A DNA stretch of 64,000 nt from Geosiphon pyriformis uo1 (GCA_016748015.1 JAAOMT010000503.1:459669-523668); one strand, 5' to 3'. Numbered from the stretch's first letter, positions 14,108 to 48,254 are shown. Program-made: numbers and translations. Notes: a model not told the origin generated them from the sequence alone.

Positions 14108-16180
14108 GTTTTGTTTTATTTTACTTTTCACAATTTACAAGACACCAACTTTTTTGTTGTGAATTTAATAACTGCTTTTAACAGTATTATGACAAAGAAA
14201 AAAGTGGTAAAAGAGACTATTTATGGTCTTACAAATGGTATCTTTATACAAAAACCAAAGTTTTTGAAAATATCAAATACTTAGAAAATAAAACGAATTT
14301 ATCAATAAAAATACCTTTAAGTAATGCTGACTTTAAATAATTTAAGATCATAAAAACAGACTTAACAAAAGAAATAATAAGCTTTTTAGCAACTAATAAT
14401 AGATATAATAAAGATGGTAAAGATAAAAGTCTTTTAAACTTTCAAACAAATACTTTTAAAGTTAAAAGATTTAATCTTAACAAAATAAATAGTTTTTTTG
14501 GGAGGTTTCTGAATTATAATATAAATAATAATAAAATTATTTTTCTTTTATACAATTTTATTAATTTAAAAAAAAAATAAATTGATTTAAAAATAATTGA
14601 AAAAAAATGTAATTATTTATAACAGTAAAAAAAAACATTATAACAAAAATACTGATTATTAAAAAGTTGTTTTTAAAAATTAATAGATTTAGAAAAGCCA
14701 ATATTTTTTTAAAATTTAAGAAAATTATCTAATTAATTTTTACTTTTAAAAAAACATGAACAAAATTATAACTGGTTACTAAAAAAAATTACAATTTAAA
14801 AAATTTGTTTAAATTAAACTGTTGTTATAAGAATGTTTTCTTGGTATATTTTAATTGTTAATATTTTGTTTTAATTGCAATCAGTCTTTTGTGAGTTTTT
14901 TGATTTTATGTATTGAATATTAATGATAATGTACTAAAAGTTTTCTCTTGATGTTGTAATGTAAGTCTTTTCTTTAATTCTAGTTGTTTTTATATGTTGT
15001 GTATTCTTTTCCAGAGGCTAATCTGAAATCTACCCACTGTCTGGAGTCTTCTCTAAGGCTATCCTTGCAATTGCCTAATGTGTTTTTCTAATCTAAAAAC
15101 ACAGAATGTTAATGGCTTTTTTACAATTTCCTTAAGTATATAATAAAGCTTTTTTAATTTAATTAGTAATCATGTAAATAATCTTGATCAGAGATTATTC
15201 TTCCAAAGAGTTCAAAGATGGAATGATAATTTTATTTGCTAGAGAGGATATGTGAATTTTATTGTTAATTTCATAATTGTAATATTCATTTAATTTATTA
15301 TTTTTATTAATTTTTTTTGAATAAGATTTTATTTAAATATTTGTTGTTTTAAATTGAAGCTATTCTATTTTTCATTATTAAAAACTATTGTATATATATA
15401 TAATTATTAGTTTACAAAATAACGTCTTGTAATACTCTATTTCTATTATTTCTAAATAGTACTTATTACTATTGTGAAATAGTGCTTACTGTTTTTGCAC
15501 AATAGTGCTTGCTGCTATTGTACAGTAGTGTTTGCTGTTATTTGTAAATTATTTCTTTTTATAAATTGTTGCTGTGCTATTTTATAATTGGCTAATTTAT
15601 ATTATTTATAATTCCTATTAAATTCTTAAACTGTAACACTGTAATTGTTAAAGAAATTTTTATGAATTTATTTAAAAAAATAATTGTTTAGTCTTGTTTG
15701 TATTTGAAATAATAATATTAATATAATTACAACTTATTAAGTTATAGTAAAAAACTGTAATTAAATTTGCTAAATTAAATTAAACTAATTAATTGGTATT
15801 CAAATAATTAATTTTAATTAAAAAATTTAATTATCAAAAAATTGTTTTAAAGCTTTGTTATTTATTTATTTTATAAATATAATTATACATAATTTTTTAA
15901 AAAAACCTAATAAAAAACTTGTAATTATTAATTGCTTATTTGTTATTAATATTAGAATTAAATATGAAAATATGCATAATATTAAAATAAAAAAAAACTT
16001 TTTGTCTTCTTAATTTTATAATTATAACCAAAGCAAAGAATAAAAAAACTGTAACTAATACTTTTTCTTTAATATCTTATAAAATTTTATTCAAAAAAGT
16101 TTTCTTTGTTGTAAAAGCTATTAAGCAAAAAATTTTAAAAGCTTTTTTTTATTTAGTAATTATAAAAAGCTGTCTTTGGT
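14090..16180 (+). mobile_element. Extremely decayed LINE ORF1 remnant, interrupted by a solo LTR
   Basis: Collinear similarity to the ORF1 at 21169-22066 (VKH, ..VIVKEI, QLI.L.QK.V.KFA, FKALLF segments) survives under heavy G>A and C>T decay. Confidence 0.6.
14823..15638. mobile_element. Solo LTR (family C) with 4-bp TSD CTGT
   Basis: TGTTA...TAACA termini. CTGT at 14819-14822 and 15639-15642. Homologous to 34984-35603 (ATTGCAATCAGTCTTT, CTGAAATCTACCCACTG). Confidence 0.88.
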
Positions 16181-16289
16181 AGCTATTGAAGCATTTTTTT
16201 CATTTTTGGTTAATTTTTCATCAATTAAAATTTTCTTAAAAAAATACATTTGAGTTAGTTTTAATATTGTCTTTACTTTTTTAAAGAGG

Positions 16290-18245
16290 CCAAAAATTTT
16301 TAATAACAGACTAGTCAACAATCTGATTTTTTTTTCATAGTTTTTATACCAAATGTTACTAATATTTTTTTTTCAAAAAAAATAATCAAAAATACTAAAA
16401 GTTCAAAAAAATAGAAACAATAACTTGCTTCTGTTATTATTATACTGAACTTTTTTGTGGTTTTTAATAAGATCTTAAATAAGATCTCTGTTGTATTATA
16501 TAACATATCATCTAAAATAAGCCAAGATCAACTACTGGCTATATTGCCAAATATGATGTTTTTTGGCAGATTTTTATTAGTTTTAGAAACAAAACAATTA
16601 TTTCTTATAGAGTTATCTATTTTTAAGAACTGGGCTAACCAAATGGAAACTGAATTATTCTTTTTATTGGTTTTTAGTGTTTTTACTAGTGATATTTGGG
16701 AAATTATTACTAGTTATTAAAGATTTGCTGAATAAGTAGTCTTTACTCTAATGCTTGATATTACTTTTAAGATTAAATTGGCTTATGTTAAAACTGTTTT
16801 TCAGTCTGTACATGGTTTTTTAGATGCAAAGTCAGTATTAAAAGACAATATAAAGCTTTTTTATATGAAATTTGCTTCTTAAGAGTCTTTAAAAGCTGTT
16901 TTTTTATTAAGTTTACAAGTTCTGTTCATTTAATTACTCTTAAAATTGTCAAATCTTTGGTAATTTCTAAGTTTAGTTCTTTTTTTGCTGTTGTTATACT
17001 GTATAATATGTCTTTGGATATGTCTATTTTTAATATTAAAACAGCTCTTAATGTGTTTGATAAGGTTGTCTATATAGTATTAAATTCTGTTGGTGTTTAG
17101 TAATATGTGGTTGTTTATTTTAAGAAACTAGATTCTGTTGTATTTATTTTAAATTATTGATTAATTTTGGTAGATAAAAATAGTATTAAGATCTTTTTTT
17201 TGGTAAATTAAAATAAGACTATTATATTTTATAATAAGTTTAAGACTAAATTGGTCAATCTTTTCTTTAGTTATACTGTTTTTAAAATTAGTGATATAAT
17301 TTCTTAAATTGGTAATTAAACATGTTTTATTTTTTGTTTTTTTAATTTTGGTCATTGTTCTCAATTTGTTTGGATCTCAAGTAAATTTAAATACTATTGT
17401 AAACAAAATTGGTATGCTAAAAAAGTACTATATCTGATAAAAAACTTCTGGCTATTAGCACTGTTTTAGATGTTAAAAAGTGGTCATCTGGCTGTGGATT
17501 ATAAAGTATCTTCAAGATATTTATACCATGTTTTATAAGTTCTAAGTTTTATGTTAAAGCTTCTGCTTTTTTAAGCTTCTTTGAATTTTCACTTCTAATA
17601 ATTTCTGCTTCTTTTTTTTGCTATTGTTGGTAACTTTTTAATGCTGTTTCAATTGTCTTTTTTGGAATCTAATCTGACCAAACTTTTTGCATTGGTTAAG
17701 TCAATTATTAAGCTTGTTGGCTTTCTGATTACTACATTTAAATAGTTTATTAATAGTAATTTGGTTTTAAATAGTATTTTTAGTCTTAAGATTAATAAAC
17801 TTATAGTTTATTTGGGTTTTTTTAGCAAAGTTGTTAATAAATTGGAGAAAAAAGTGGTTTTATTAAAAAAAAGTGCTATATAGATAATATTAACATGTTT
17901 GGTAATTCAGATTCTTCAGTTGACATTAATAATAATATATTTTCTAATTTGATGTTTTTTTAATACATAAGTTTAATAGTATTAAAACTGATTTTTTAAA
18001 GACAGCTAAATAACTGGTTGAGTTAATTTTTTGTAATATTAGATTATTTAATATAGTTTAAAAGATATTAGCTTTGAATAAGTTTACTTTTGTTATAACA
18101 ATATAGCATAGTTTGAACTGGTTTAAATAGCTGATTATATATAGAAAATACATAAACTATACTTAGTTTAAAATACTTAGTTTGTTTTAAAGTATTAGGT
18201 AATGGTTGGGCCATACTCATTAAACTTAATAAAAAAAATAAATAA
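16290..18245 (+). mobile_element. ORF1-only non-LTR retroelement (RRM-like, RRM-like, CCHC ORF1 followed directly by LINE-type 3' end), decayed
   Basis: Decayed frame reads FKIKLAYVKTVFQSVHGFL, IKTALNVFDKV, YVVVYF and CFRC..GHLAVD. The 3' hairpin is at 18170-18188 and TTGGGCCATACTCATTAAA plus A tail at 18206-18245. There is no room for ORF2. Confidence 0.7.
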
Positions 18246-18879
18246 ATATGTAATTATATGTTTTAAATTTAAGAAAATTTTGAATTAAGCTTATTGTATT
18301 ATTTTTGTTTTGGTAATATAAATTTATTTTAATTATATTAAATTTAATTTGTTATAAAAATTGTAAAAAGTTTAATTATTTTGTATTAAAGTGTGTTTTT
18401 TTTGTTTTTTTTCTTAAAGTTATATTGTATTTAAAAACTGTATTTTTAATTAATTAATACAACTTTAAAATACTAGTTTAATTGTTTTTTAGTATTTTAA
18501 TTTATTTTTGTGTTTTTAATTATTTTTTACAATAAATTTTAAATTAATTTTTGTTTAAAAATAAATAATGATTTTTTTGTTTTATAAAACATTTTTATAA
18601 TTTTTATTTTTTTTATTTATATTATAAAATAAATATATATAATTAATAATATAATGAATAAATCTAGTTATAACAATCTGTTACATGAAACAATCTCGAA
18701 AATAACTTTAATTAAAATTGAAAATTTTATTAAATTTTAAAAAAATAACATGTAATAATAATATATATTATTTATTTTTATTAAACAAATTAAAGTTGGA
18801 TCATTAATTTCACTAAAAATAAATACAATATTTAGTTATTGTAAAGTAAAAAATAAACAAATAATTAACTAAATTTTAT

Positions 18880-20156
18880 CTAATTTTAACATTTTGCACT
18901 TTTGTGTTCTAAAAGATCATATTTACTACAAGTGTATTTTGTGTATAATTTTCCATTTTTTTAGTAGCAGACTTATATTATTTAATTTCTGAATGTTTTT
19001 TACATTATGATACTAATAGATTTTTAATTTGTTCAAGCTTATTTTTTTTATTGGCATCATTAACTTGATTGTTTTTTAAGACTTGGTCTTAATTTTAAAG
19101 TGTAGACACTACTTTTTTATGTTGGCTAATAAATTGCCTTAACTATATTATTATCTTACTATGATTATTATATTCAATAGTAAGTTGAGCAGTTTGTTAT
19201 ATAAGTTTTTATAATTCACCATATTTTTGTTTTTTTTATGCTACAAAATATAAAACATTGGTAATAGTTTTAGGTACAATTAAAAAATTTGAAATTATTA
19301 TTTTGTTAGAAGAATTTTTTAAAACTTCTTAATTTACAAAGCAAAAAGCTTTAATGACTAAATTATTGTTTTTTTTTTAATTATATCTTTGCAAGAGTAT
19401 TATTTGAATGTAAAACTCCATAATTTTTGAATGTAGTATTATTTGAAAATAATAATAACAAATAATACTATAAAATATACTAGGCAAGTATAAATAAAGA
19501 TAAGAAACAGAATTAACAATTATAATAAAATATAAATGCTTGCTATTTTTTGGTTATAAGTCTGTAATTTTTTACACTTTTTTAATGTTTTTTTATCGAC
19601 TTTAACAATCATTGATTTCAATAAAATTTGTTTCATATTATACAAATTCTCAATAAAATTACTTATTATATTAAAACTGGAATCTTAAATATCAAAATAT
19701 TATTAGATAAATGACTTGAAAAAGTACATTAGAAAATAAATTTTTTTATCTTATTATAAGTATGATATTCAATAATAATTAACTTACAATAAACTATAGA
19801 TATTGTGCTATTTTTAAATGTTCTATAAATAAGATATAAAATATAAAATATTAAGTTATTTGTTTATTGACTTCAGAAAAGAGATTATGGCCAATTAATA
19901 TAATTTTCATACAAAATAAAAGTGTACAATATTTAAAAAATAATTTTATTTTGCTTTATTTTCAAGTCTTGTGTCTAATATATCAGCAAAATCACACAAA
20001 TTGTCATTTGCTAAAAGCATATATTTAATAATATTGTTAAGGCTTTTAATACAAGAGGTAATTTGAGTTCTTACAATAAATATTTTTAATATAAATACAC
20101 AGATTTATGCTTGTTGGTTGGGATAAAAAGCTTTTATTAAATAATCTTTAATATTA
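18880..20156 (-). mobile_element. MULE/MuDR (FAR1-like, SWIM zinc finger) transposase remnant, C-terminal half
   Basis: Minus-strand decayed motifs: IFIVRTQITSCIKSLNNIIK (FTAG..T.RVE..N), a SWIM-like segment, QKYGEL..L..QTAQL and a terminal knuckle KYTCSK..LLEHKSAKC. Confidence 0.7.
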
Positions 20157-20160
20157 ACAT

Positions 20161-20541
20161 TGTTATAGATAATTATTTAGAGTGTTAAAACAAATAACAA
20201 ACTTATAACTTGGTGCTTAATAGTTGTTAATGGTGGTAATTTCTGAAGATTTTGAAGTTTGAAGATTTTTGTTGAGTTCTTTGTATAATAAACAGAGATT
20301 TAATTAATGATTTTTTTCTGTAAATTTTTTTTTTCAGTATAATAACCAGTTTATTTTGACAGTCATGTTTTTTTAATAAGCTATTTTTAAGTTTTCTATT
20401 CTTGTTTTTGGTTTTTTACCAAACTATTTTTGATGTCAATAACTTAGCACTTAATATTTTTAATTAATTAATAAACAACAAAAAAAACAAAATAAAAATA
20501 AATAAATAAAATAAAATAAAAATAAAAAATTAATATTTCAT
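20161..20541 (-). mobile_element. Partial family-A-like LTR inserted in the MULE remnant
   Basis: Starts TGTTA and is homologous to 34707-34980 and 44425 onward. Left flank ACAT. Confidence 0.75.
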
Positions 20542-21010
20542 TGTTATAAATGATTATTTAAAGTATTAAAACAAATAACAAATCTGTAATTTAGTGTTTA
20601 ATAGCTGAAAATATTGGTAATTTCTAAAAGTTTTGAAGTTTAAAGATTTTAGTTGAGTTTTTTATATAATAAACAGAGATTTAGTTAATGATTTTTTCTG
20701 TAAATTTTTTTTCCAGCATAATAGCTGGTTTATTTTGGCAGTTATACTTTTTTAATAAGCTATCTTTAAGTTTTTTACTCTTGTTCCCAAGTTTTTTACC
20801 AAATTATCTTTGATGTTAATTATTTAGTGCTTAATTCCTTAATTAAGTAATAAACAACAAAGAAAACAAAATAAAAAAAATAAAAAGAAAATAAGAAAAA
20901 AAATAAAAAATTAGTATCTTATCAATAGCTGTGATCAAAAGCTATTAATCTAATATAATTAAGTATTAAATTCTATTAATATAGAATGTTAATAGTATAG
21001 AATAAATTAA
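20542..21010 (-). mobile_element. Second partial family-A-like LTR inserted into the first
   Basis: Starts TGTTA, repeats 20161-20541 and extends further along the family-A LTR. Left flank TCAT; the distal end is lost. Confidence 0.75.
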
Positions 21011-22704
21011 TATTTAAAAAAAAATTAAAAAAAAACTTCTTTCTCTCTTTTATTTCAAATTTCCAAAAAAAAGTTCAGAATTTTGAAAAAAGTTTTTTCT
21101 GTTTTAATATTGCATATTTTACTATTTTTCAAATACTAAACTCTTTTGTTGTTAAATTGGCTGTTACTATGAGTGTTTTGGTGTTAAAAAAAAGTTGGCC
21201 AGAGTTGTGGTTACAGGTTTTATTAGTAAAAGCTTGACTTAAAAGCAAAAGTTATTATATGGCAATATTAAGCATTTTGGTAATAAAACAGATCTAAGTT
21301 TTAGAAATTCAGAAAGAATCACTGGCCAATTTGCTGGTATGGAAATAGATAATAATGCTAATAGTAAAAGTAAAGCTCAGTTGAATTTTAAGATAAACAC
21401 ACCTAAAGTAAAAAAAAAGTTAACACTAGTGCTGTAGTTGGTTTTCCAATTGGCTTTTTGGTCTTTAATATAGATAATAAAGATAAAGTTTTTCTTTTTT
21501 TTTATTTTTTTATTTCTCTTAACAAAAAATGAATTGATTTTAAGATAATTAAAAACCAGATTAAAGTAACTATTAAAAAATTTTTTGTATTAGATATCAA
21601 TTTTTTAATAATGGAAGGCAAATTGGCAACTGTAAAAACTCAATTAATTAGAAAATTATTTTCAATAATTAATAGTTTTGGAAGAACACTATTCTTTCAA
21701 AATTTAAAAAAATTATTAGATTAATATTTACTTTAGAGAAAAGCATAAAAAAAGTCATATTATTGGTCAGAAAAAATAATATTATAATAAACAGTAATTT
21801 TAAAAGACAAAAAATTTGTTCAGATTGGGCTATAGTAATCAAAAAATTTTTTATAGATATGTCAAAAAAAATGATTATTATTGTAGTATTTAAGTTTAAA
21901 CAAATTAAGTTGATTAAATTGCAACTAATTAGAATATAACAAAAAACCATAGTAAAGTTTGCCAAATTAAAGCAAACAGATCAATTGGCAGTAAGATAGT
22001 TGTTTTTAATCAGAAAAGACTTAGTATGTATAGCTAAAGCCATAAAAAATTATGATATCTAGACATTGTTACTCATAAAGAAAACAGATATAGAAAAATA
22101 GTAGATCAATAAGAGAGTAGAAGTTAATACATGAGCACATTGTTCAGCAATATGGAGCAATATTAGAAAATTAGAGCACATTGCTTAGCAATATGAGTAT
22201 TGCTCAAGAAATCATAGCATATCACTCAAGAATGTGAATAATTTCATAGAACATAAATTAGGTATATATAGTAGTAGTATCAGAAGTTAGAAAATTAGAC
22301 TTCCATAGTCAGTAAGACTCTTAGAATCAATTAGACTCACAAGTTATAACTATTAAAATTTCCAAGACCTCTCAGTTTAGATTTGATCTAAGTAATTTTC
22401 TACATTACAAATATCAATAAATAATTATTTATTATCTTAATTCATTCCTTACTATCAACACTTCATATTGATAGTAATTAATACTTAACCACACTAAAAC
22501 AATAGCTTTTGATCATGGCTATTGATGAGATACTAACATTTATTGCCTTGGCTTATTTCTTTATTTTCTTTATTTTCTTTATTTTCTTTTATTTTCTTTT
22601 GTTATTTCTTTTTTGTTGTTTACTAATTGATTAAGGATTAAACACTGAATTATTAACGTTAAAAATTGCTTGGTAAAAGACCCCTGTGAGTGGGTAGAGC
22701 ACAT

Positions 22705-23677
22705 TGTTACCAGAAGTTTTTGGTCTCTTCTTAGCTCTTGTATGTTTGTTGTAATGCTGTTAATTCATGACTATGGGAAGTGTTTGAACCTCCAATAACT
22801 GAATTTATCTTTAAATTATCTTCTATAATTTGAACTGCTGGGCTTATGAATGGAATGGCCAATTCCATGCCAGTTACTTTGTATAGTTACATTGTAGTAA
22901 ACATTAACTTTTTTCCAGGAAATGCTTGTCTGGAAGCTCACTAAAATGTGTAGTTACTTTACTGTAAAAATCAACTCTTCTACAGGAATTCTTGTCTGTA
23001 GGTTACCCAAATAATTTATAATAAGAAAAAAAAAACAAATAAAAAAAATGTAAAAGAAAAGTAAGAACTAATTTATGAGAGTTGTTTCAGATCCAGACCT
23101 GGAAGTGCTTTAACAGTTTACTGAAATTGATAGCTAGTCAATTTCAAATTGTTAGTAGGAATTGGTTAATTTTCAAGGGAAATAATTAAGAATTTGGCTT
23201 TTTGAATTATTTGATATTTATTTTGTTTTTGGGTGTAAAGAATAATTCTAATTGTTAAATCTGAAGTAAGATACATTTTTTCGAAGAAAGAAGCTCTTCT
23301 TTTATACAACTTGTCATAACACTATTCTATGAACTTAAACTTTGTTCTTTTCTACAATTTTGCTGAATTAAAGCTACATTTCAGCGAACTACAAGTTATT
23401 TTTGCAAACTATTAGATATTTCGGTAAACTATCAATTATTTCTACAAATTTCTACAAATTTCAGCAAACTTGTTGAATGTTACATAGTTTGGGGTATTGC
23501 ATGATTGATCATTGCAATTAGATTACATTTGTGTTATGTACAAATTGGATTATTAATTAAATGATAATTTCGAATATTTTGTTAATGTAATAAGTAATAA
23601 TTTGAAATGCTAATTAATGATAAAAATTATAAGGGTAATTTTATGCTAAGCAATATTTCTAATTTTGTCTGATAACA
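22705..23677 (-). repeat. 3' LTR of element 1
   Basis: TGTTACCAGA...TCTGATAACA, about 94% identical to 31602-32574 by hand alignment. PPT GAGGAGGAGG on the minus strand at 23681-23690. Confidence 0.95.
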
Positions 23678-23689
23678 TAACCTCCTCCT

Positions 23690-24365
23690 CAAGACTGAGC
23701 TTCATCGAAGTCTAAGTACTGTCTGTAATTTCTAAATAATAATCCAAAATTATTGAAGAAATTTGGTCTGAAAATTGTTAAAATTTCAGTTTTGTGAGCT
23801 TTCCAATGTATTGAATCTTCAAAGGTTGTAAAATTGGGTTTTGTAGGACGTTTTCACAGGTGTAAAATAGGTCATAAAGTCTAAGAGCAGCTCTTAGTTT
23901 ATAGTGGCTGTTTGTAGGTCCAGATGTTGTCTTGAATTTGTTGTGGAGTTGTTTCTGAATAACTTCTTTTGTGAGATTTGCTGCTGTAAGCTTCAGTTTT
24001 TGTTTGTGAAGTGTTTTTTCAATGTAGAAATATATATATATTGGGGGGTATTTGCTGTTTTCTTCATTAAAACACAGTTGAAGTTTTTGTTGAATAGTAG
24101 CATTTGGTGGAATACTAATAGGGTTGAGCAATAAGTTTTTCCTTAAAGCAAGCTTCAAAAGTTCTGGTAAATGAATTCCAGAATAACTTCTTGTGTTCTT
24201 TTTATAAGGGTAATACTTTCGTGAATTTGGAGTTAGATTTGTAACTATTTCTGTTTGAATATAATTAATATGTTTTTCAGTGATAGTAATAGATAATTCG
24301 AGTATTGTTTTTAAAGCTAACATTAATTTTTGAAATAACTGTTGAATATTTTGAGGAATAGTCAT
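23690..24365 (-). pseudogene. Third ORF (ORF3) of element 1, between integrase and PPT; function unknown
   Basis: 195-aa ORF 23778..24365 continues past a probable CAA>TAA stop to the PPT. It shares motifs with the equivalent ORF of element 2. Confidence 0.7.
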
Positions 24366-24509
24366 TATAATGAAATTGGAAAAATAAAATTGAAATTATT
24401 TTTGGTATGTGGGTTTTTATGTTATTTTTGTTTTTCAGTGTGCTTTGTTTTGTTTTTGTTGTGACATTTTTTCTAAATTATAAGGGAATAATTATAGTAA
24501 AATTGAAAT

Positions 24510-31556: not shown

Positions 31557-31582
31557 TTTGAATTTGTTGTTGCTGTGTTATT

Positions 31583-31599: not shown

Positions 31600-31601
31600 A
31601 A

Positions 31602-34983: not shown

Positions 34984-35603
34984 TGTTATGGAATGGTTTT
35001 CTTGTTATATTTAATTGCTGATATCCCGCTTTAATTGCAATCAGTCTTTCGTGAGTTCCTCAGTTCTATTTGTGTGATAATGTCACTGTTACACTGAAGG
35101 CTTTCTTTTTACTGTTGCGATGTAAGTTATTCTTTAATTCTTGATTGTTGTGTGTGTTTATGTACTCCTTCTCAGAGGCTGAACTGAAATCTACCCACTG
35201 NNNNNNNNNNNNNNNNNNNNNNNNNNTTTTTAAAGGTTTCTTGGGATATTTAATTTGAAAGTATGATTTAAAGTGGAGTTTGTTGGATAAAATTGGATCT
35301 ATTGCTTGATAAGTTATGATTTTTATTACTTGATTGATTCTTTCCCAATATTAAAACTACTGTATATATACATGTTTGTAGTTCTACGAGAAAATACTTT
35401 CTTTTTGATATTTCAACCTGGTGCTTGCTGCTATCACCAGTTGGTGTTGGCTGCTATTGTGAACTGGTGCTTGCCACTATCACGAGATGATGTTTGCTAC
35501 TATGTTAATCATTACCTTTCTAAGATTATTACTGTGCTATATTATAATTGAATAGTTTGTATTATTTTTATGATTCTTTTTGCTAAATTCTTAAACCGTA
35601 ACA
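34984..35603. mobile_element. Family C LTR with TSD ACAT inside the 3' LTR of element 2 (contains an assembly gap)
   Basis: TGTTATGG...CCGTAACA termini, with ACAT at 34980-34983 and 35604-35607. The gap means a full element could be collapsed here. Confidence 0.85.
35201..35226. other. Assembly gap (26 N)
   Basis: Run of n characters. Confidence 1.
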
Positions 35604-36169
35604 ACATCAATAACTTAGCACTTTAATTCTTTAATTAATTAGTACACAATAAAAGAAAAAAAAATAAAAAAAATAAAAAAAAATAAAAAAATAAGCCAAG
35701 ATGATAAAGTTAGTATCCTGTCAATAGCCATGATCAAGAGCTATTGTTCCAGTATGATTAAGTATCAATTATTATTAACATGAAGTGTTGATAGTGAAAA
35801 GTGGATTTGAGATAGTAATTAATTAATTATTTAATATTTGTAATATAGAAGGTTAATTAGATCAAATCTAAACTGAAAGATTTGTCTTTTTCTACTTCTA
35901 ATGCTACCAATATATATACATAATTGAGATTTCTCAATTTTTCAATTCTTCACACCAGAAATCTTGGAATTTCTGAAATCCTGCAATTTTTTTGAGAGAA
36001 ATCTTGGAATTCTGAAATTCTGCAATTCTTTGTATAAGAATTCTGAAATTCCTGAAATTCTGCAATTTCTTTGAGAGGAATTTTGGAATTCCACATTTAC
36101 TATGGCTACTTCTGATTGGCTAATTTATATGCTAATATACTTCCTATATTTTATGAGTAATATTATTTC

Positions 36170-36850
36170 TTTTTTTTTAATATTAAGCTCCATTGAGATC
36201 TCTTAATTCTAATTCTCCATCTTTGAGTATTTCTTGAACTTTTTTTTCAAGAATTACTTGTGCTATTTTGTTCTGTAATTTCAAATTGAGCATTGGTTAT
36301 TTTTTCTATTTGGTTAATGCTAATAGAATTTATTTTTGGATTAAGTAAAATTTCTGGTCGATCTTGAAATCTGGTGTATAGCCAATAAATGGCTCTTGCT
36401 TGTGTGATCAAATTGTTCTTCCCCACAAATTGTTCTAGTTGTTGCAGTATTGTTGTGTCAAATAATTGTTTTGTTTTATTCATATACAAGCCCTAAATGT
36501 TCAAGTGTTGTCCCAAATAAAAGTAACAAAAGTTTTTTAGAAATTGTTGTATTTACTAATTTCAAGTTTCTATAATCAACTCTTAATATTGGGTGACTTT
36601 TGGTTGTGTTTCTATTGCCAGTTTCACTTTTGTGATTATTTTGTTCACAGTGTTTTTTGTTTTTCTCTGTATTTTATTTCATAATTTTTTTTTGGTGTTT
36701 GTGTATCTGATAGTTTGTTGATTGATTGTAATTTCCATTTCTTGTTGTTGAATCAGTTGAAAAAGTTGTTGTACTAGTGAGTAAATGCCATCAGTAATCT
36801 CTATTTTCTGCTGTTTTTTGTTATATATACTATGTTTTTATATACTCTTT
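36170..36850 (-). pseudogene. Third ORF (ORF3) of element 2, decayed
   Basis: FCYFYLGQHL...QARAIYWLYTRF...ISINQIEKITNAQF, lying between integrase and PPT. The 5' boundary is approximate. Confidence 0.62.
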
Positions 36851-36869
36851 TGGTTGTTCGATTTTACAT

Positions 36870-39800
36870 GTTTGGTTCAATGATTATAATTGGTTTTAAA
36901 TCTTGTGGAATTTCATCTGGTTTAACTAGTATTTTCTGTACTTTTAATTGTAGAATATTACTGGTAGATGATAATGCTATATAATAACATTGTTTCAGTC
37001 AATCACCATGTGCTGCTTTGATTAAGATTTTGTTGTTCAATCTTAATTTATAAGCTCTATTTTCAAGAATTTTTTCTATGTAAAATGGTTCATCCTATTT
37101 GGAATCAAATTTTCTACTCCATTGTTTTTCTGCTTTAGTATGATGTAGAAGTACTTTGTCTCTAATCTTGAATTCAACTGGTTTCTTTGGTAGTTGGTTA
37201 TTGTGTCTTTTTTGTGACTTTTGGATGTTATCAGCTGCTCTTCATTGTGTATTTTCTAGTGTTTCCATTAAGTCATATGTCTTTTTCAACAATGTTCTTT
37301 GAAAATTCTCTTCTGTTATTGATTCTGTTGAATATGTTTTAACTTCTATCTCAACTGGTAATGTTGCTGTTCTACCATATACTAATTTAAATAGTGTTGC
37401 TTGTGTAGTGTCTTGCTTTATTGTCTGATAAGCAAATAATACTGATGATATAATCAAATCCTATTCATCCTGGTTTTTTTGGCTGATTTTAGCAATGGTT
37501 TCACACAATATTCTGTTAAAATTTTCAACTAATCCATTTGTTTGTGGATGGTATAGTGATGATAATAGTCTTTTTATCCCAAATTTTTGACTTAATTCTG
37601 CCAATGTTTTATTCACAAAGTGAGTTCTTTGATCTGATAGTAGTTTTTTTGAACATTCATGTCAACAGATTAAATCTTGATGAATAAATTTGGCAACAGA
37701 TTCTGCATCTGCTCTTTGAATGGCTTTTGCTTCTGGCCATTTTGTGAGATAATTCATGGCTACTGCAATATATCTGTTGCTTCTACTGGTTATTGTTAAT
37801 GGTCTAACTAAGTTAATTCCAATATAATTGAATGATTGTCCTACTCTAATTGGTCTCAATAGTTTATTGAATTTTGTTCCTTTTCTTTTCTGACAAGTGT
37901 CACAATTTTGCACATATTAGATGATATCCAGATATATTGATGGTCAATAATATCTTTTTCTGGTTTTTTCTATAATTGGTTCTTTATAAAAATGTCCTGC
38001 TGTTGGGTTTAAGTGCATATTAAATAATATTATTTCTTTCTCTAGTTGGTTGATCTGAATTTTTTTTGTTTTTCCAGTAAAGTATATTTTAATGGTTGAT
38101 AAAATATTTTGATTGTTGTTTGATATGGCTTTGTTCTTTTGGAGATAATTTCTCCTTAAACTGCCAAGTATTTATATAATGTTTGAGTTGTTGGTATTTT
38201 TGTATATTCATTTTTTGTTATATATATTTTTTTTTTGGTTAAAATGTTTTTAGATTTGTCTTATTTACAACAAACTATCAGCATTTCTATTGTTTTTTCT
38301 TTTTTTATAATGTACTGTGAATGTATATAGTAATAGTGCTATTTTCTATCTTGTATGATGATTATCTCCAAATTTTTCCTTTTGGATTGAAATCAATTCC
38401 TTGTAATTAGTGTACACATCAAACTTTTGATTCAAGTATTCTTTCTATTTAGTGACAGCCCAATAGATAGCTAAGTGTTTAAGTGCTAAAGTTCTATAGT
38501 TCTTTTCAGCTGGACTTAAGCTTTTGCTAGCATATGCTACTAAGTGTTTTCTTCTATTTAAACTTTTCTGTGACAGTACTGCTCTTAATGCTTGGCCTGA
38601 TGCATTGGTGGTGATAATAAATGGTTTGCTGTGATCTGAATACATTAACACTGAAGCTTGAATAAGCTTTTTTCTTAATGTATTAAAAGCTTTTTGCTGG
38701 TTTTCCATCCATTCATATTTAGTGTTTTTTGATTAAAGCTGGTGTAATAGCTGAGCCAGTTTAAAAAAATCTTTGATAAAGTGACAATAGTATCTGGCAA
38801 ATCCCAAGAATGCTCTTAGTTCTGTCAAGTTGGTTGGTACTAAAAAGTTTTTGACCACTTCAATCTTGTCTGAATCTGTTTTAATATTATCTTTGCTTAC
38901 AACATGTTCCAAAAACATAAGTTCAGTTTTTTCAAAAAAACATTTGGTTGCATTTAGCTTTAATCTAACTTTTTTTAGTCTTTTAAACACTTGTTGGAGA
39001 TGATACAGATGATTATTGAATGTTTTTAAGAACACATTGGTGTTATCTAAATATATAACTACAGATTTTCATAGCAGTCTCATATAGACAATTTTCATTA
39101 GTCATTGGAATATGACTGAAGCATTTATCAAGCCAAATGGCATAACTTCAAATTCAAAATTTTTTTCTTGTATTGTAAAAGCTGTTTTTTCTTTGTCTTC
39201 CAGTTTCATGGCTACTTGCCAGTAACCACTGTCTAAATCTAAAGTTGAAAACTATTTCTTTCCTCCAAAAGCATTGAAAAGTTTTTGTATCTTTGGAGTC
39301 AAATAGCTATTATCTTTGATTACTTAATTCAATTTCCAATAATCTACACAAAAGTGTATTTTTCTATTCTTTTTATAAACTAATACTACTAGTAATGACC
39401 ATAGACTCATTTATGGTTGAATTAACCCATTGTCAAATATTCAATTGATTTCTTGATAAATGATCTCATGGCTGGCTGGTGGTACTTTGTATATTCTCTG
39501 TTTAATTGGCATTGCATCTCCAGTCTTGATTTAATGTTGGATGATATTAGTTCTGCCAAATTCATTTTTGCTGGCAAAGATGTTATTAAAATTGTTAAGT
39601 AACATCTTGAGCTGCATATGTTGTAGTGGATCTAAGTTTTTCATGTTCATTTATTCCAATTGTTTTGGTTGGAGCAAATAGTATTTATTTCATCCATTTA
39701 TTGTTTGTAATATAATATTTACATATCTGCAAAGTTGTAAAAAGTCTGGAATGGTACTTGGTGGTTGGTCTTCAACTTCAGAGCCTAAGTATTTAATAAT

Positions 39801-42800
39801 AGTTTTTTTTGGTATCTCAATAATGTGTTCAATAATGTGTTCAGTATTGTTGTGAATGGGAATTTTAATGTGTTTGTGGTTCTTGGCTGGTATGTATAGA
39901 TTAACTAATCCAATTTCTCCTGATTCACAAAGGATTGCTTCTGCTTCAAAAATCTGTATCTGATTCTTTACTTTTCTCTTTATAGCTAACATGTACTGGT
40001 CATATAGTGGAATAGAAATTGACTGATGGGTGGAGATAATTTCTCTCTTGTCAATAACTTTTTCCTCCACCATATTAATTGGTATATCTATTCTATTCAT
40101 GGATCCAAATCTTTGTATCCCTTTAATTGTAATTTTTAATTCTTTTCTGTTTTCTACTGATACTAATTGAGCTACTTTAACCAGAAACAAGAATATTGTC
40201 TGTGCTATCTTTTTATTTGGCTCTATTGTATATGTCTTTTTTGAGCCATTTTGTAGTATTGCAATAATATTTTCTATATACCCTGCATCAATTATTCCTT
40301 CTTTGATATTGATTCCTTTTTTGGCTAAGCTACTCCTAGAAATTAACTGAACTATTGTTGTTGCTGGAATTTCCAGTGCTATTTTAAGATTAATACATGT
40401 GCGTAAATATGGTTTCAATTTGATGGCATCTTTTCCTGAATATCTTAGATCAAATCCAGCATCAGTATCATGTGTATGTTTTGGCATAATACTTTTATTA
40501 TTATTGTTAAACTATTTAAGTTTCTGCTTCTTGGTAAGGTTAGGAAGTGTGATAAATGTTTTGGGATTTGAATCAGAATCTGAATTGTTATTATTTTTCT
40601 TGCCATATTAAGTAAAACTAGAATCATTGTTTTCATTATCATTATTGTCAGAGTTTGAATTGGGATTGTAAATTGATTCCAATTCTAATGTGCAACTACT
40701 GATTGGTACTTTTTCCTTTGAGATTATGTAGATTATGTGGATTGGCAGATTGTAAATGAGATCACACTTATTACAATATTAAAAGTTACATAGGATTAAA
40801 TAGTGGTCACATAATTAGGTGTTTATCTCTTTCAAGCATTGTTCTTGCTCTTCTCTTATTGGTGCCAAATTTTGATAATGTTTGTAAAATTTCTCTGGGC
40901 CTGTCTCAATATTCAAAAAGATGTCTGGATTGAGAATAAGAATGATGTCAACTAGTTCCGGAGGATTGTTCTTTATCTTTAGAATCTCACTAAGTAAAGT
41001 GTCTTCTATTTTGGCATTGGCCATTCACCAGATCTTGTTTTCATTATGTGGGTAACCATTCAAGTAAAAAATTGCTCAGTGCCAGACAGCAGTAACAGAT
41101 GTTTTATAACTTACTCAGTTACTGATGAGAATCATATATTAACATGAAGCATCACACGTTCTTTCTTGACTAGGAATGTCATTTTACATTCTTTCATCAA
41201 GTAATCATTCATTACAAATGAGACATGGCTTGTTATTTCACTTTTTTTGTTTTTTTGGGTAGCCATAGCATTCTCTATGACACAGCTTATAGTAGTAGTG
41301 GATTTTTGTCCAATAGTCTTTGTCAGGTGCAATCCAAGCTTCCATGAAAGAAAGTTTTTTTCTATAGTCCTTGTATTTGAGAGGTATATATGGTGGCTTC
41401 TTTATTAGTTTATGTGAGTACTCTTTTTTCCAGTCATTAGTCATTCCTTCTGTGGTGGTGGTTTCTTTAGGTATGTCTTTTTCCTTTCCTTTTTCTTTGT
41501 TGTCCCAGAAAAATACTGATGGTAACTCATTGTGTTCCATGTTGGTCCAGAAAACTTGGTATGCTTCCCAGGTAAGTTTTTTTTCTTCTTTTTCGAACTC
41601 AATGAGTAGTGCTGATGGCATGATAATAGGCTTGAAGTGGTCACACATGGCTGGTACACATGTGTATTGACCATTCTGGCTAAGCTAGAGCTCTTGAGTG
41701 TTCCAATCAAGTGTCATATTGGTTTTGAACAATCAGTCATTGCCAATGAGTGCTTGGTATTGAGTGGCTTCCATAACTAATATCTTGATTGGTATAATAA
41801 TATCGTTGACTTTGATGAATAGGTCATTTATTTTACCAATTGGAGTCTTGGTGGCTTCATTAGCTGTAATTATCCTTGTACTGGTAGCTTGATTAACTTG
41901 GCAACCTAATTGGTTTATGAGCTGTCTTATGATGATACTGTCAGCTGATCCACTATCTAAGATCAGTTTGATGGAATGGCCATCAATTTTGGCATTAGTT
42001 TATATCATAGTAATGGGTTTTTCCTCAAAAGCAGCTCTACTGAACAAAGAGACTTTTGATGGTTCTTCAATTTCAAAGGAAAATATAGCTACAAGTGACT
42101 CATCTTCTATGATGGTGGCTAATGGAATGTTGCTGATAAGTGTTGGTTGTTGGTTAGTTTTCAGATTATTGGGTTAAGTGTCTTTTAAAATAACCAAGAG
42201 ACTTAAATAATATTGGAAATTCGAGTTTTGTGTGTACCCAGTTCCTGAATTCCGAGACCATAATCCTAATTGTTGTGTAGAGAAGCTGGGGATTAGTTGG
42301 TAAACAACTATTGCTGATCTCCAATTTTGAGTGACTCTTGATCTAGAGTTTTTTAATGTCATTTGAGCTGGATTTGATGACAGTATTTGAATTGCAGATG
42401 TCTGATAAATTATTTGTGACTGCAGTGGTTGATATATTACTTGTGGCTGTGGTTGATAAATTGGGGTTTAATATATGGTTGGTTGATAAATAGGCTGCTG
42501 CATTATTGGTAGGTAAGTGGATTGATATTGATCTTAATTTACATAATAATTCAGCATTTAAAGTCCATAATTGGGTTTTTATATTGATTTTCCAATTGTA
42601 TATTACTATAAGAATGGCAGTTAGCTTGAATATGGCCTTGTTTACTACAGTTGTGGTAGACACATGTCTCTGGCTGCCATGGCTGATTGGATGATAATGA
42701 CGGATATGGCTGATTTTGGAAATGATTTGCATTTTTGAAATTATTGTGTCATTGTGATGGTTAATAAATTCCGCAATTGTCAGTTAAGTATCTCTCAATT

Positions 42801-44362
42801 TTCTAATTGATTGAATCACTGAATTGCTTTAGTTTGGAATCCAAGTCAGATGATTCATTTATTACTAGATTTATGGCTTAAGTGTGATTAGCTTCTAATT
42901 CAGCTAATTCAAAATTTCTGGTGCATGTGACTGTGTCTTGTAAGTTGACTAGATATAGTGGCCATATGTGTTACAGAATACTACTGCATAATACACAAAT
43001 AAACTGATTCAGAATCTGGGCTGTAGTAAAATAATTGGCATCGATGGCTTGTATTTGGCATAGATTTTGATGGAAATATTCCAAGTAAGTGGTGACTGCT
43101 TCAGTATCTTCTTGTTTGATGGTGGTGAAGATATTGGCCAAGCAATTAATGCTGTTGCTGTTACTAAAATATCTTAAAAATTCTAATTTAAATGCATCAA
43201 ATGTTTGGGGTTTCTGAACTAGGCTATGATATCATAAATTGACAGCATTTTGAAGAAAATAGGAGATTGCTTGAAGAGCTCTGGCATCATTCCAGTTATT
43301 AGTAATGATGGCTTTGGTAACATCATTGATCCATGTTTGGGCATCATCCTCTTTGCCAGAAAATTTTTCTAGCTTTGTAATAGGTGTGTATGCCATTTGT
43401 GCAATTAGTTGTTAGTGTAGTGATTGAAGTTGTTGTTGTAACTGTTGAAGCAGCTGCTGAGGTTGTTGAGATGGTTAAAGTGGCTATTGAATAGGTTGTT
43501 GAAGTGGCTGCTGTTGAATCAGTTTAATAATCAGTTCAATTGGTGACTGATTGATAACAATTACTGAAGGTAAGTTTTGCTGATTAATTGTTTTGGGATT
43601 TGGATTGTTTTAAGTTTGCTGGGTTTGAATATTTGGAGTTTCAACTTTTGGATTTTTTAGGATTGGGTTTTGGTAAGTAAATTTCTGATCCTCACTTTTT
43701 TCTTCTTCTGATTCAGTTACTTCTCATGAACTTGCAGTTCTGAAATCTGGTTGAGGTAGTGGTAATCGAAATTCTGATGGTGTTGGTGATCATAATTTAA
43801 ATCCTTCAAAATATTCACTATATGGTCCTAATAACTCTGCTTTTTTTTGCTTATTTTAAAATAAAAATTGTTCAAAAGTTAATGTTGCATTTGATGTGAA
43901 CACATCTGTTGAGAAGATATTGATGACACTTTCTAGTGTATAATAATATGATAAATTGGTTGGTGATTTAACTCTGGTTTTCTTCCAAGTAAATGGTTGT
44001 ATCTTTTTGAGTATTACTACTGGTGTTTGCAATTTTCCTTTGTCTTTGTCTATGTAGATAATAGGGAATTGTTGTTGGGTATATCTTTTAATGGTTTGAT
44101 TGATTTCCTTAATGATTGGTACAAAACTGTAATTCTTTGGTAAACTGGTATGTTAAAACAATTTTGTATAAAAAATTTTTCTTACAGATTCAATGTTAAC
44201 TGTTCTTCCTAAGCAGTTTGTGATTTTATTATTAACGTAAAAGTTAAAGACTAATTCTGCTGGGAAATGGTTATTGTTTAATCCTAATTGTTGGCTGTAC
44301 TGTTGAAACAAAAATTTGGTGAATTCTAAATAGTTTGCTCCTATAATTTCTGATTCTGCCAC
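36870..44362 (-). pseudogene. gag-pol polyprotein of element 2: Gag, protease, Cys-rich domain, dUTPase, RT, RNase H, integrase
   Basis: Gag PITKLEKFSGKEDDAQTWIND; protease LILDSGS; dUTPase DAGFDLRY, SRSSLA, GIIDAGY, KIAQ (40100-40490); RT YLDN (D>N); RNase H TNASGQALRAVLSQ; integrase CDTCQK and TKWPEAKA. Confidence 0.92.
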
Positions 44363-44405
44363 TTTTGTATAATTGTTGTTGGTGCTGGTTCTCTGTAAGA
44401 TTATA

Positions 44406-44422
44406 CCTCATAGGGAGCACCA
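44406..44422 (-). promoter_or_regulatory. Primer-binding site of element 2 (shared with the non-autonomous element at 32825 and 45472)
   Basis: TGGTGCTCCCT(A/G)TGAGG, complementary to a tRNA 3' end ..CCUCACAGGGAGCACCA. The shape fits elongator Met, Ile(UAU) or Thr; not resolved. Confidence 0.85.
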
Positions 44423-45599
44423 AATATTACAGATGATTATTTGGGGTCTCAAATCAAATAACAAAACTTGTAACTTGGTGCTCAGAAGCTATTTGTGATG
44501 ATAGTGATCTGAAGGTATTATTATCTGAAAGTTTTGGTTGAGTTTTTTGTATAATAGGCAAAGTTTTAATAGGTGTTTATTCATAGCTTTCCAGAATCAC
44601 AATTCTGTCAATTTCTTTCTTCAGCTTAATGGCCAGTACTCTTCTGATAAGTAATCCATAATTCTTTTATGTGCTTTACCTATTTGCAGAGGTCTTTTAC
44701 CAGACAATTCTTGATGTCAATAACTCAGCGCTTTAATTTTTTAATCAATTAGTACATGATAAAAAATAAAAAAAAATAAAAAAAATAAAAAAAAATAAAG
44801 AAATAAGCCAAGATAATAAAGTTAATATTCCATCAATAGCCATAATCAAGAGCTATTATTCCAGTATGGTTAAGTATCAATTATTATTAACATAAAGTAT
44901 TGATAGTGAAAAGTAGATTTGAGATAGTAATTAATTATTTATTTGATATTTGTGATGTAGAAAGTTGATTAGATCAAATCTAAACTAAAAGGTCTGTCTT
45001 TTTTTACTTCTAATACTACTGATATATATATATAATTGAGATTTCTCAATTTCTTAATTTTTTACACCAGAAATCTTGCAATTTCTTTGAAAAAAATTTT
45101 GGAATTCTGGAATTCTGTGATTTCTTATATGAGAATCCTGAAATTCTTGGAATCCTGCAATTTCTTTGAGAGAAATCCTGGAATTCCATATTTACTATGG
45201 CTATTTCTGATTGGCTAATTTATATGTTAATATACTTTCTATATTCTATGAGTTACACTGGCCATTAAGTTGAAGAAAGAAATTAACAAAATTGTGATTC
45301 TGGGAATCTATAAATAAACAACTATTGAATCTCTGTTGATTATACAAAGAACTCAACCAAAATCTTTAGATAACAATATCTTTAGATCACTATTATCGTG
45401 AATAGCTTCTGAGCACCAAGTTACAGATTTTGTTATTTGATTTGAGACCCCAAATAATCACTTATAATATTTGGTGCTTTCTGTAAGATATAATCCAACA
45501 GAGAATTAACACTAGTAACAACCATACAAGAAAGTAGCAGACCAAGAGAAAACAAGGGAAAATCATTTAGTATTCATGAAATCTTTATTTTACTATTAT

Positions 45600-46140
45600 C
45601 TTTGATAAAAAATTATTAAATTCAAACTCCAATTATTCAAGACCCAATTATTAAAACCCCAAACATTCAAAAATTACTGTTGATAAATTTGTCAAAACTC
45701 ATTAAATTCAAACTTTGATTATTCAAAATCTGATTGTTAAAACCCTGAATATTCAAAACTTACTGTTGATAAATTTGTTAAAAATTCATTAAATTAAAAC
45801 TCTAATTATTCAAGACCCAATCATTAAAACCTTGAACATTCAAAAATTACCATTGATAAATTTATTAAAACTTGTTAAATTAAAACTCCATTTATTTAAA
45901 ACCCAATTATTAAAACCCCAAACATTCAAAACTTACCTTTAATAAACTTGTTAAAATTCATTAAAACTCTGACTATTCAAGACCTGATTGTTTAAAAACC
46001 CAAACATTTGAAACCTGATAATTCCAATCTTATTATCATACAAAAAAACTTACCATCGATAAAACTTGTTAAACCTTTAGTAATTCAAACTCTAGAAATT
46101 ATTCAAAAACCCAAATATTTGAAGTCTGATAAATTTCAAA
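45600..46140 (+). repeat. ~85-bp tandem repeat array in the non-autonomous internal region, copy 2
   Basis: Collinear with 32955-33490. Confidence 0.85.
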
Positions 46141-48254
46141 CTCTGCTATCATACAAGAAAACTTACTTCCAATAGCCCAATAAAACCTAATTTCCACAGT
46201 ACCAATAAATCAGCAAAACTCACCTGATGGTCCTGAGTCAAAATATTGGGACATAGTCACAATCCACTTTTATGTGTCATATATTCAAATAAAAGTCAAT
46301 CAGTGAAAACAAATGAGAATTAGAATCGGAACTTAATCCCAATTCAAACTCTGTTAATAACAATGACAATTTAAACTCTGTCAACAATAATTCAAACTCT
46401 GCTTCAAACATCAAACAATATATTACACTTTTAGATCTTACAATGGAGCAGAAATTAATTAAATTCAGTAATAATAATAAAAGCATTATGTCTGAATATG
46501 CACATAATACAGATACAAGATTTGAACATGAATATTCTGAACAGATCACTATAGTTAAAAACCCCAGTCACATATAAAATTAGATTTATAAATAGCAATA
46601 GAAATTATAGCAACAACATTGATACAAAAGAGAAATTTAGAAAATTTTGCAAAAGCTTAATATAAAAAGAAGAGATAATGTTATTTATAAAGAAAACAGA
46701 TATAGAAAAATAGTAGACCAATAAGAGAGTAATAATTAGCACATGAGCACATTGTTTAGCAATGTGAAGCAATATGAAACGATGTTAGAAAATTAGGGCA
46801 TATTATTTAGCAATATGAGCATTGTTTAAGAAATCATAGCACATCACTCAAGAATGTGAGCAATTTCATAGAACATAAATTAAGTATATATAGCAGTAGT
46901 ATTAAAAGGTAAAAAATTAGACTTTCAAAGTCAGTAAGATTCTTAAAGTCAATTAGACTTGTAAGTTATAATTATTATAATTTCCAAGACCTTTTAGTTT
47001 AGATTTGATCTAAGCAACCTTCTACATCACAAATATCAATAAATAATGATTCATTATCTTAATCCACTTCCTATTATCAACACTTTATGTTAATAGTAAT
47101 TGATACTTAACCACACTGGAACAATAGCTCTTGATCACAGCTATTAACAAGATACTAACATTTATCATCTTGGCTTATTTTTTTATTTTTTTTATTTTTT
47201 TTTATTTTTTTTTGTTATTTCTTTTTTGTTGTTTATTAATTGATTAAGAATTAAGTGCTGAATTATTGACATCAAGGATTGCCTGGTAAAAGACCTCTGT
47301 GAGTGAATAGAGCACATAAAGGAATTATGTATTACTTATTAGAAGAGTACTGGTTATTAAGCTAAAGAAAAAAATTGACAGAATTGTGATTCTGGAAAGC
47401 TATGGATAAACAACTATTGAATTTCTGTTTATTATACAAAGAACTTAACCAAAATCTTCTGATAACAATACTTTCAGATTACTATCATCACGAATAGCTT
47501 CTGAATACTAAGTTACAAGTTTTGTTATTTGATTTGAGACCCCAAATAATTACATCAAAAAATTGGTTCAGGATGCTTTTGTTTATCTTATTAGTAAAAA
47601 CAACTGCACATAATCTTGGAATTCTTTTAGAGAAAGCTGGTAAAAAAATCTGCATTATAAATTGATTATTGAATATTAATAATAAAACATGTTGTGCTGT
47701 AGTTGGCTTTAAATCTGATAAGAATTTGGAATCTGTTTTTTGCATAAAGCCAATCTTTGGTGGTATAAAACTTTTTTGGACAAGAATAAATTTGGTATAT
47801 TATAAGAAATATGAATATTTTAAACATTCTGTTCTAGAGTATAATATTTCTGGTTTTTATGTTTTATTTAGCCCAAGTGGCTAGCCATATATAAAAAATC
47901 TATAAGTTATGTTTAATTTAAGCCACTTAGTTTGGTTCTATGTACTAGATAATAGTTGGATTATACTCATTAAATAAATAAAAAAATAAAAAAAAATTAT
48001 ATAAAAATCTTAAAGTAAAAAAAGATTTAATTATAATAAATTGTGTTATTAAAAATTTTATTAATGTTTTAATTAATTTGTTTAAGAATTTTACTAGTCT
48101 TAAGACTAAAATAAATTTTGTTTAAATGAATAATAATATAAATAATGCTAAAATATTAAAAAAATAACTTTCATTATAATTATTAATATTTATTTTAAAT
48201 TTGATTATAAAATAATAACTTTTTTTTTTATTTAAATAATAATAACAATATGTT

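Follow-up and report, generated by a model that had tools for sequence, protein, structure and literature searches.

For prototype foamy virus (PFV) integrase, the target consensus is (-3)KWK\VYRBMWM(+6), with few T and A at the edges of the target-site duplication (TSD); a central pyrimidine–purine step with V..B edges is characteristic of integrases making a 4-bp staggered cut, in which the central target step is unstacked in sharply bent DNA (PMC4422553). In Ginger1 DNA transposons, which encode a Gypsy-integrase-like transposase and have TGTNR termini, the TSD is CCGG in 75% of cases and CCGT/ACGG in 24% (PMC2836005). Drosophila elements of the Gypsy superfamily produce 4-bp TSDs within palindromic motifs, with ATAT/TATA cores or, in the case of ZAM, CGCGCg (PMC3276498, PMC2527525). 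CG-centred 4-bp targets thus exist among Gypsy-type integrases, and Ginger1 and ZAM are the closest analogues of the system considered here, a nest of long terminal repeat (LTR) retrotransposons of families A/A', B and C in a 64,000-nucleotide stretch of the Geosiphon pyriformis uo1 genome (GCA_016748015.1 JAAOMT010000503.1:459669-523668; hereafter, the window, with positions counted from its first nucleotide), where the nest lies between SMC and TOR genes. The initial annotation of this stretch had proposed that the elements integrate specifically at CpG and that all seven readable junctions are decayed N-CG-N sites. According to the analysis presented below, the nest probably consists (with a probability of about 0.7, judging from the sequence) of related dUTPase-bearing Ty3/Gypsy elements whose integrase would cut with a 4-bp stagger, require a pyrimidine–purine (YR) step at the centre of the target and prefer C in each half-site.

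Target-site duplications and the target motif

LTR ends were located by self-BLAST and terminal probes in the window and in 12 further Geosiphon loci (L001–L012) chosen through gag homologues; about 340 kb was sampled, and 21 two-ended insertions, 13 of them of family B, and 11 single ends were collected. As most insertions lie in other repeats, 20 of the 21 could be compared with empty paralogous sites. Two candidate ends were left out, namely, L003:49 (register unclear at the locus edge) and L007:2023 (a 15-nt probe match only). The LTR end at 20161, adjoining the tetramer at 20157, was counted as one single end, the junction at 20538 entered no count, and neither was included in the paired statistics.

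The TSD was 4 bp long in 21/21 pairs, in agreement with the expectation that this lineage makes 4-bp duplications. In the window, the tetramers were CTGT/CTGT (14819/15639), ACAT (20157), TCAT (20538), ACAT/ACAT (22063/47552), ACAT/ATGT (22701/32575), CTAA/CTGG (34703/45258) and ACAT/ACAT (34980/35604), exactly as first annotated, and each of them adjoined the TGTTA...TAACA end of an LTR. Outside the window, the TSDs of family B were CCAT/CCGT (B_L002), CTGG/CTAG (B_L003), CCAG/CCAG (B_L004), CTAC/CTAC (B_L005), ACAG/ACAG and ACGT/ATAT (outer and inner insertions of B_L006, respectively), GCAG/GCAG (B_L007, the youngest element, with LTRs 98.5% identical), TCAG/TCAG (B_L008), ATAG/ATAG (B_L010), TCGT/TCAT (B_L011) and CTGT/CCGT (B_L012). 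The remaining pairs were GCAT/GCAT (C_L001), TAAT/TAAT (the solo LTR at L004 21866-22758), CCAG/CTGG (A_L011), TTGG/TTGG (a solo LTR in L011) and ATAT/GCAT (the host LTR in L011). The junction at 47552 initially seemed doubtful, as the adjoining LTR end appeared degenerate, lacks its last ~10 bp and is followed by PBS-like (primer-binding-site-like) ATTGGTTC; it proved to be valid, since in the paralog L010 6611-5907 the left flank continues without interruption into the sequence after position 47555, and ATGT is present there once.

It is hardly conceivable that the tetramers are an artefact, whether LTR ends assigned to the wrong position, for instance if ACAT belonged to a longer terminal inverted repeat, or matches arising by chance in AT-rich sequence. 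ACAT+TGTTA and TAACA+ATGT are indeed reverse complements, and ACAT/ATGT recurs often; however, more than 12 different tetramers were found among the insertions, they form direct rather than inverted repeats, in empty paralogs the two flanks meet precisely at one copy of the tetramer, and the inner LTR borders adjoin the PBS and the purine tract instead. The variability of the TSDs and the single-copy empty sites led to the rejection of an ACAT-containing extended inverted repeat.

A central YR step was found at 19 of the 20 sites with paralogs, against a background of 0.236 (P = 1.7e-11), and at 14/15 sites outside the window (P = 2.5e-8). With the further loci included, the pattern thus lies far outside chance expectation. 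In the profile of junction flanks (n = 49), the first position of the duplication (o1) was A in 22, C in 14, G in 8 and T in 5 cases; the second (o2) was a pyrimidine and the third (o3) a purine in 48/49 cases each; and the fourth (o4) was T in 26, G in 16, C in 4 and A in 3 cases. The edges of the TSD were therefore poor in T at o1 (5/49 vs. 32% background) and in A at o4 (3/49 vs. 36%), and the positions together define a weakly palindromic target motif, V-Y-R-B. Among the target classes, A-Y-R-T was the most frequent, with 10/33 events against a background of 1.95% (P = 5e-10). At o5–o7, no clear K-W-K / M-W-M signal was seen in the 49 decayed flanks, except for few G at o6–o7.

These features are shared with the integrases of PFV and murine leukemia virus (MLV), namely, the 4-bp duplication, the near-obligatory central YR, the avoidance of T in the first and A in the last position, and a weak palindrome implying a symmetric intasome (PMC4422553). 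The Geosiphon element differs from both in a far stronger YR preference (19/20) and in favouring C·G at the inner positions, and it may differ at the K-W-K / M-W-M positions, which are not evident in the 49 flanks; moreover, it is a fungal retrotransposon known here from sequence alone. With Ginger1 it has in common the 4-bp TSD, TGTNR-type termini (TGTTA here) and the presence of CCGG and CCGT among the preferred targets, although Ginger1 transposes by cut-and-paste and is almost fully CG-specific, whereas only about half of the Geosiphon sites are CG-centred and A-Y-R-T is the commonest class; the two integrases are likened here by target and termini. The Drosophila Gypsy elements are similar in having a Ty3/Gypsy integrase, 4-bp TSDs and lineage-specific target motifs of alternating pyrimidines and purines, but they belong to another kingdom and clade, and the Geosiphon elements have no env, carry a dUTPase between protease and reverse transcriptase and show a looser motif than the ZAM hexamer.

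CpG-centred sites and the half-site preference

A site was classified as CpG-ancestral when any copy had CG, or when both TG and CA occurred among the copies; for the null distribution, all remaining positions in the 2 × 150-bp flanks of these sites were classified in the same way against the same sets of paralogs. CpG-ancestral centres were found at 10/19 YR sites, with 3.6 expected (P = 7e-4), and at 6/14 sites outside the window, in loci new to the initial annotation, with 2.65 expected (P = 0.031). In a control matched for age, direct evidence of CpG was present at 7.1% of YR pairs in LTR pairs and at 6/20 TSD centres (P = 0.002; outside the window, 5/15, P = 0.003). Six TSD pairs, ACAT/ATGT, CCAT/CCGT, ACGT/ATAT, TCGT/TCAT, CTGT/CCGT and CCAG/CTGG, prove that CpG was intact at insertion, and the sites that were CG when struck include ACGT, CCGG, CCGT and TCGT. 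Thus, CG centres are over-used approximately 3–4-fold, and CA/TG and TA centres are used as well.

For the junctions of the window, CpG ancestry could be demonstrated in five of the seven cases for which it had been claimed. The empty copies of the element B site have ACAT three times and ATGT twice, which, together with the ACAT/ATGT TSD, proves that ACGT was intact when B inserted. The site of composite element A is CpG-ancestral, as the empty L010 paralog has ATGT whereas the TSD is ACAT/ACAT. At the 34980 site of solo LTR C2, ACGT is kept at ~22656 and in L003, and the paralogs comprise ACGT (four copies), ACAT and ATGT; the decay product in the sister LTR of element A' is the opposite one, which places ACGT at the site at the time of A' insertion; its state at C2 insertion is ambiguous. 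The 34703 site appears in paralogs as CTGG and CCAG and also as CCGG in L001 and L007, which makes CCGG the family-ancestral site, with an ambiguous state at insertion. The 20538 site is represented in LTR copies by TCAT, TTGT, CTGT and CCAT. The other two are 14819, whose sole real paralog has CTAT, and 20157, for which no paralog was found.

The CCGG of the A-type LTR was struck twice independently, at 34703-34706/45258-45261 in the window and at L011 4010-4013/22550-22553. The window insert is an A' element lacking a ~30-bp segment near the LTR start, while the L011 insert is an A-type element with this segment and a CCAG/CTGG TSD; this CCGG is an integration hot spot used by different subfamilies, and its double use speaks for target choice acting on individual sites.

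These data bear on the stronger proposal of the initial annotation, according to which the integrase reads CpG, perhaps 5-methyl-CpG (5mCpG), all insertions went into N-CG-N with CA, TG and TA as decay products, and the elements are thereby steered into methylated repeats in a self-limiting manner. The six TSD pairs, the 10/19 CpG-ancestral sites and the twice-struck CCGG agree with it, as do the location of all sampled insertions in CpG-depleted repeats and the fact that Ginger1 transposases, which are related to Gypsy integrases, are specific for CCGG/CCGT (PMC2836005). It is nevertheless highly improbable. Eight sites had only CA, TG or TA in all paralogs, among them a CCAG in coding sequence (8/8 copies), a TA site (6/6) and a GCAT with five copies. 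Under strict CpG targeting, the youngest insertions should carry CG at positions 2-3, but B_L007, in which three of the four LTR CpG sites are intact in both copies, has GCAG not only in both TSD copies but also in the paralogs. Where both copies of a non-TA pair are decayed, there are far more concordant than discordant pairs instead of the expected 1:1 ratio, and TA/TA pairs would take four parallel changes from CG. A CG-specific integrator would have nearly all TSDs centred on CG, compared with 10/19 here, and no MBD, SRA or CXXC domain was matched in Pfam in the open reading frames (ORFs) of element B, those without a family included, a result that concerns domain presence only. It should be noted that CA, TG or TA is not diagnostic of decayed CpG, because C>T substitution outside CpG is also common in these repeats. 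Over-use of CpG therefore stands, and a strict need for it does not.

Another way to account for the excess is by location: only the central YR would be needed, and CpG would be enriched because a host factor tethers integration to, for example, young, CpG-rich methylated transposon chromatin. Chromatin factors tether many retroelements, the hosts of the sampled insertions are all other transposons, and the excess is moderate (3–4-fold). This explanation is unlikely, however, as local CpG density was controlled by a null drawn from the same 2 × 150-bp flanks and paralog sets, the excess coincides exactly with TSD positions 2-3, A and T are preferred at the outer positions, and the CCGG struck twice points to site-level choice.

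The central steps were CG at 9–10, CA/TG at 8 and TA at 2 sites, with availabilities of 0.19, 0.51 and 0.30, respectively. A model of two independent half-sites with q(C) = 0.68 predicts 8.9 CG, 8.2 mixed and 1.9 TA, against 9, 8 and 2 observed, corresponding to an approximately 2.5-fold preference for C per half-site after correction for availability. Because the counts fit two independent C-preferring half-sites, the CpG excess can be explained without CpG-specific or methyl-specific reading. The integrase would cut the target with a 4-bp stagger and require a flexible YR step at the centre of the site; each half of a symmetric intasome would independently favour C over T at the inner position (~2.5-fold), so that CpG-centred sites would be the best targets without the dinucleotide or its methylation being read. 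The CpG preference is thus real and moderate, layered on the YR centre, and would represent an ordinary sequence preference of the integrase, which partly supports the earlier interpretation.

Several points weigh against this reading. One centre is not YR, namely, TAAT/TAAT at L004 21866-22758, and the paralog test gives the CpG excess outside the window a P value of only 0.03. The number of insertions is low (21 pairs, with 13 from family B, in 340 kb picked through gag homologues). CpG ancestry was deduced from paralogs, and the state at insertion is ambiguous for four sites (A, A', C2 and C_L001). The half-site model was fitted to the same counts that it explains, and n = 19 leaves room for modest CpG cooperativity or an effect of 5-methylcytosine (5mC). 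The insertion at L004 21866-22758, a B-type solo LTR within an integrase-coding region, is old and heavily decayed, with CAAC or CCAC in its paralogs.

Structure and coding capacity of the nested elements

The outermost element, composite A (22067-47551, plus strand; TSD ACAT/ACAT at 22063-22066 and 47552-47555), is non-autonomous and has the layout LTR-internal-LTR-internal-LTR, which probably arose by unequal recombination between LTRs. LTR A1 (22067-22704 + 32579-32822) is split by element B and LTR A2 (34058-34706 + 45258-45469) by element A', while LTR A3 (46677-47551) has lost its last ~10 bp; all three are on the plus strand, as are the two internal regions of 1.2 kb each (32823-34057 and 45470-46676). 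PBS-like TTTGGTGC follows both A1 and A2. Both internal regions contain arrays of ~86-bp tandem repeats (32954-33309 and 45601-45956). At the A3 end (47541-47555), the TAACA terminus is gone, yet neither the 4-bp duplication nor the host flank is damaged, which could be accounted for by a small deletion that occurred between short repeats of AC.

Element B lies in LTR A1 (22705-32574, minus strand; LTRs 22705-23677 and 31602-32574, 94% identical) between ACAT (22701-22704) and ATGT (32575-32578). Element A' lies in LTR A2 (34707-45257, minus strand) between CTAA (34703-34706) and CTGG (45258-45261); its LTRs (34707-34979 + 35608-36162 and 44425-45257) are 87% identical, and it contains a dUTPase ORF (39690-40487). 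The LTR of A' is in turn interrupted by solo LTR C2 (34984-35603, plus strand; 34980-35607 with the ACAT/ACAT TSD). An assembly gap at 35201-35226 falls inside C2; both of its sides are collinear with one C-type LTR, and, the sequence being non-coding, no reading frame is affected. A full element collapsed at this gap is conceivable, and the outer C2 junctions would be unaffected either way. A gap occurs in the same mid-LTR part of all C-type LTR copies except C1 (window 35201-35226; L001 13062-13880 and 18065-18711), which points to hard-to-assemble sequence.

Apart from this nest, a C-type solo LTR, C1 (14823-15638, plus strand; 14819-15642 with the TSD), has TGTTA..TAACA ends and CTGT at 14819-14822 and 15639-15642. 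Two reversed 3'-end fragments of A-type LTRs (20161-20541 and 20542-~21027, spanning 20157-21027 on the minus strand) have ACAT (20157) and TCAT (20538), respectively, in front. A 381-bp unit is present here in tandem, with 84% identity between 20148-20536 and 20530-20917, and equals the 4-mer plus the last ~377 bp of the A-type LTR, reversed. The two copies may stem either from a nested insertion at the same site, an ancestral YCGT of the LTR, or from a tandem duplication, possibly microhomology-mediated, and the data do not distinguish between these origins; since the junctions are single-sided and lie within this repeated unit, 20157 and 20538 are perhaps not two independent insertions.

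In element B, all ORFs and domains are on the minus strand. The gag ORF (29949-31556, 535 aa; Retrotrans_gag, zf-CCHC) is 100% identical to G. pyriformis G9A89_021562, and more than 560 paralogs were found, all in that species; the contig is therefore of fungal (Glomeromycota) and not of human origin. The pol region (24563-29741; Pfam) is broken by stops and encodes a protease (29241-29741), a Cys-rich region of 250 aa with several CxxC pairs and without a Pfam family (28215-28964, between protease and dUTPase), a dUTPase (27843-28211, between protease and reverse transcriptase), a reverse transcriptase (26535-27098), RNase H (26088-26531) and an integrase (24563-25753) with H2C2, rve and a weak C-terminal SH3-like domain. 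An ORF of 205 aa without a Pfam family (23781-24395) comes after the integrase. The resulting order, gag-protease-(Cys-rich)-dUTPase-reverse transcriptase-RNase H-integrase followed by the 3' ORF, is that of Ty3/Gypsy (Metaviridae), as are the LTR pairs (92–98.5% identical) with TGTTA..TAACA ends, the PBS TTTGGTGC after the 5' LTR and the purine tract GAGGAGGTTA before the 3' LTR. As the initial annotation had noted, no chromodomain follows the integrase: no Chromo match was obtained in any ORF past the rve core even at E ≤ 5, the B copy being broken by stops.

Fungal Gypsy elements with a dUTPase have been described before. In those of Postia, Phanerochaete and Tuber, the gag-protease-reverse transcriptase-RNase H-integrase order is the same, and the dUTPase lies between protease and reverse transcriptase, as in PosPlaTy3-5 (PMC2864245). 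For chromoviruses such as SM-Tcn1, 5-bp TSDs are reported (PMC2864245), in contrast to the 4 bp of the Geosiphon elements, in which no chromodomain was detected. The three LTR sequences of the window had been described as unrelated; this does not hold, as A' and B both encode a dUTPase and share 64–66% nucleotide identity in pol, which makes them related rather than independent families, and family C, which has the same termini, may be non-autonomous.

CpG decay of the repeat block and significance of the target motif

The ratio of observed to expected CpG was 0.81–0.83 (0.82) in the flanking genes, 0.13 at 22–48 kb and 0.06 at 14–22 kb. In the repeat block, CA/TG was raised to 1.29 and TpA was not raised (0.74–0.85). 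The GC content at 14000-22000 was 14–22%, and an old repeat that has paralogs in L008, L010 and L012 occurs twice in this region (14517-14789 resembles 21466-21780), with C1 sitting in one of the copies and composite A in the other. The remaining annotated features of the window are an RNase H-like ORF at its start (38-691), exons of the SMC hinge and coiled coil (8143-9327) and exons of a TOR kinase (mTOR and FAT domains, 55748-57732), with short introns splitting both genes.

In the related fungus Rhizophagus irregularis, methylated CpG is concentrated on transposons (bioRxiv 10.1101/2021.03.30.436303), and, taken together with the CpG depletion described above, this makes methylation-driven CpG decay of the Geosiphon repeats a reasonable inference. 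The estimated CpG loss per LTR copy was 0.3–0.8. Between LTR pairs, 516 non-CpG transitions were counted against 44 transversions, and in the B-family LTRs of the window and L001–L012, C>T was found at 13.5–15.5% of CpA, CpT and CpC sites, compared with 0.7% for T>C, although part of the C>T rate may stem from the ancestral-state rule used. Repeat-induced point mutation (RIP) was ruled out as the source of the AT-rich block, given that the depletion is CpG-specific, TpA is 0.74–0.85 and non-CpG C>T is context-independent; the bias in the B-family LTRs does not show the CpA preference of Neurospora RIP. Once an element has inserted, methylation and deamination of cytosines, specific to repeats, would convert CG to TG or CA, and a slower, context-independent C>T process would yield TA, so that most old duplications would now read CA, TG or TA.

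The nesting of the elements in repeats would most simply reflect survival bias or chromatin effects rather than a choice of CpG, since genes (0.82) are richer in CpG than repeats (0.06–0.13) and, if a preference for CpG alone guided integration, the insertions would be expected in genes instead. It is decidedly unlikely that, on top of the generic YR requirement, 5mC-CpG sites are bound better than unmethylated ones, with silencing marks recruiting insertions into silenced repeats; the 3–4-fold CpG excess in decayed repeats is compatible with such binding but does not demand it. To our knowledge, the host of ZAM lacks cytosine methylation, and a CG-rich target motif would accordingly need no DNA methylation. 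If 5-methyl-CpG were favoured after all, it would amount to a 'safe-haven' strategy without a chromodomain.

A quantified target-site motif (V-Y-R-B, with A-Y-R-T commonest and CG centres over-used) is thereby provided for a retrotransposon lineage that is abundant in an early-diverging symbiotic fungus. It would extend the structural rule established for foamy virus and MLV to fungi and link it to the CCGG/CCGT specificity of Ginger1. In practice, 4-bp rather than 5-bp duplications should be expected when LTR elements are annotated in Glomeromycota, and decayed TSD pairs such as ACAT/ATGT may be usable as internal clocks of CpG loss. More generally, a single window in which all sites look like decayed CpG can be produced by a moderate preference together with a strong decay of CpG that is specific to repeats.

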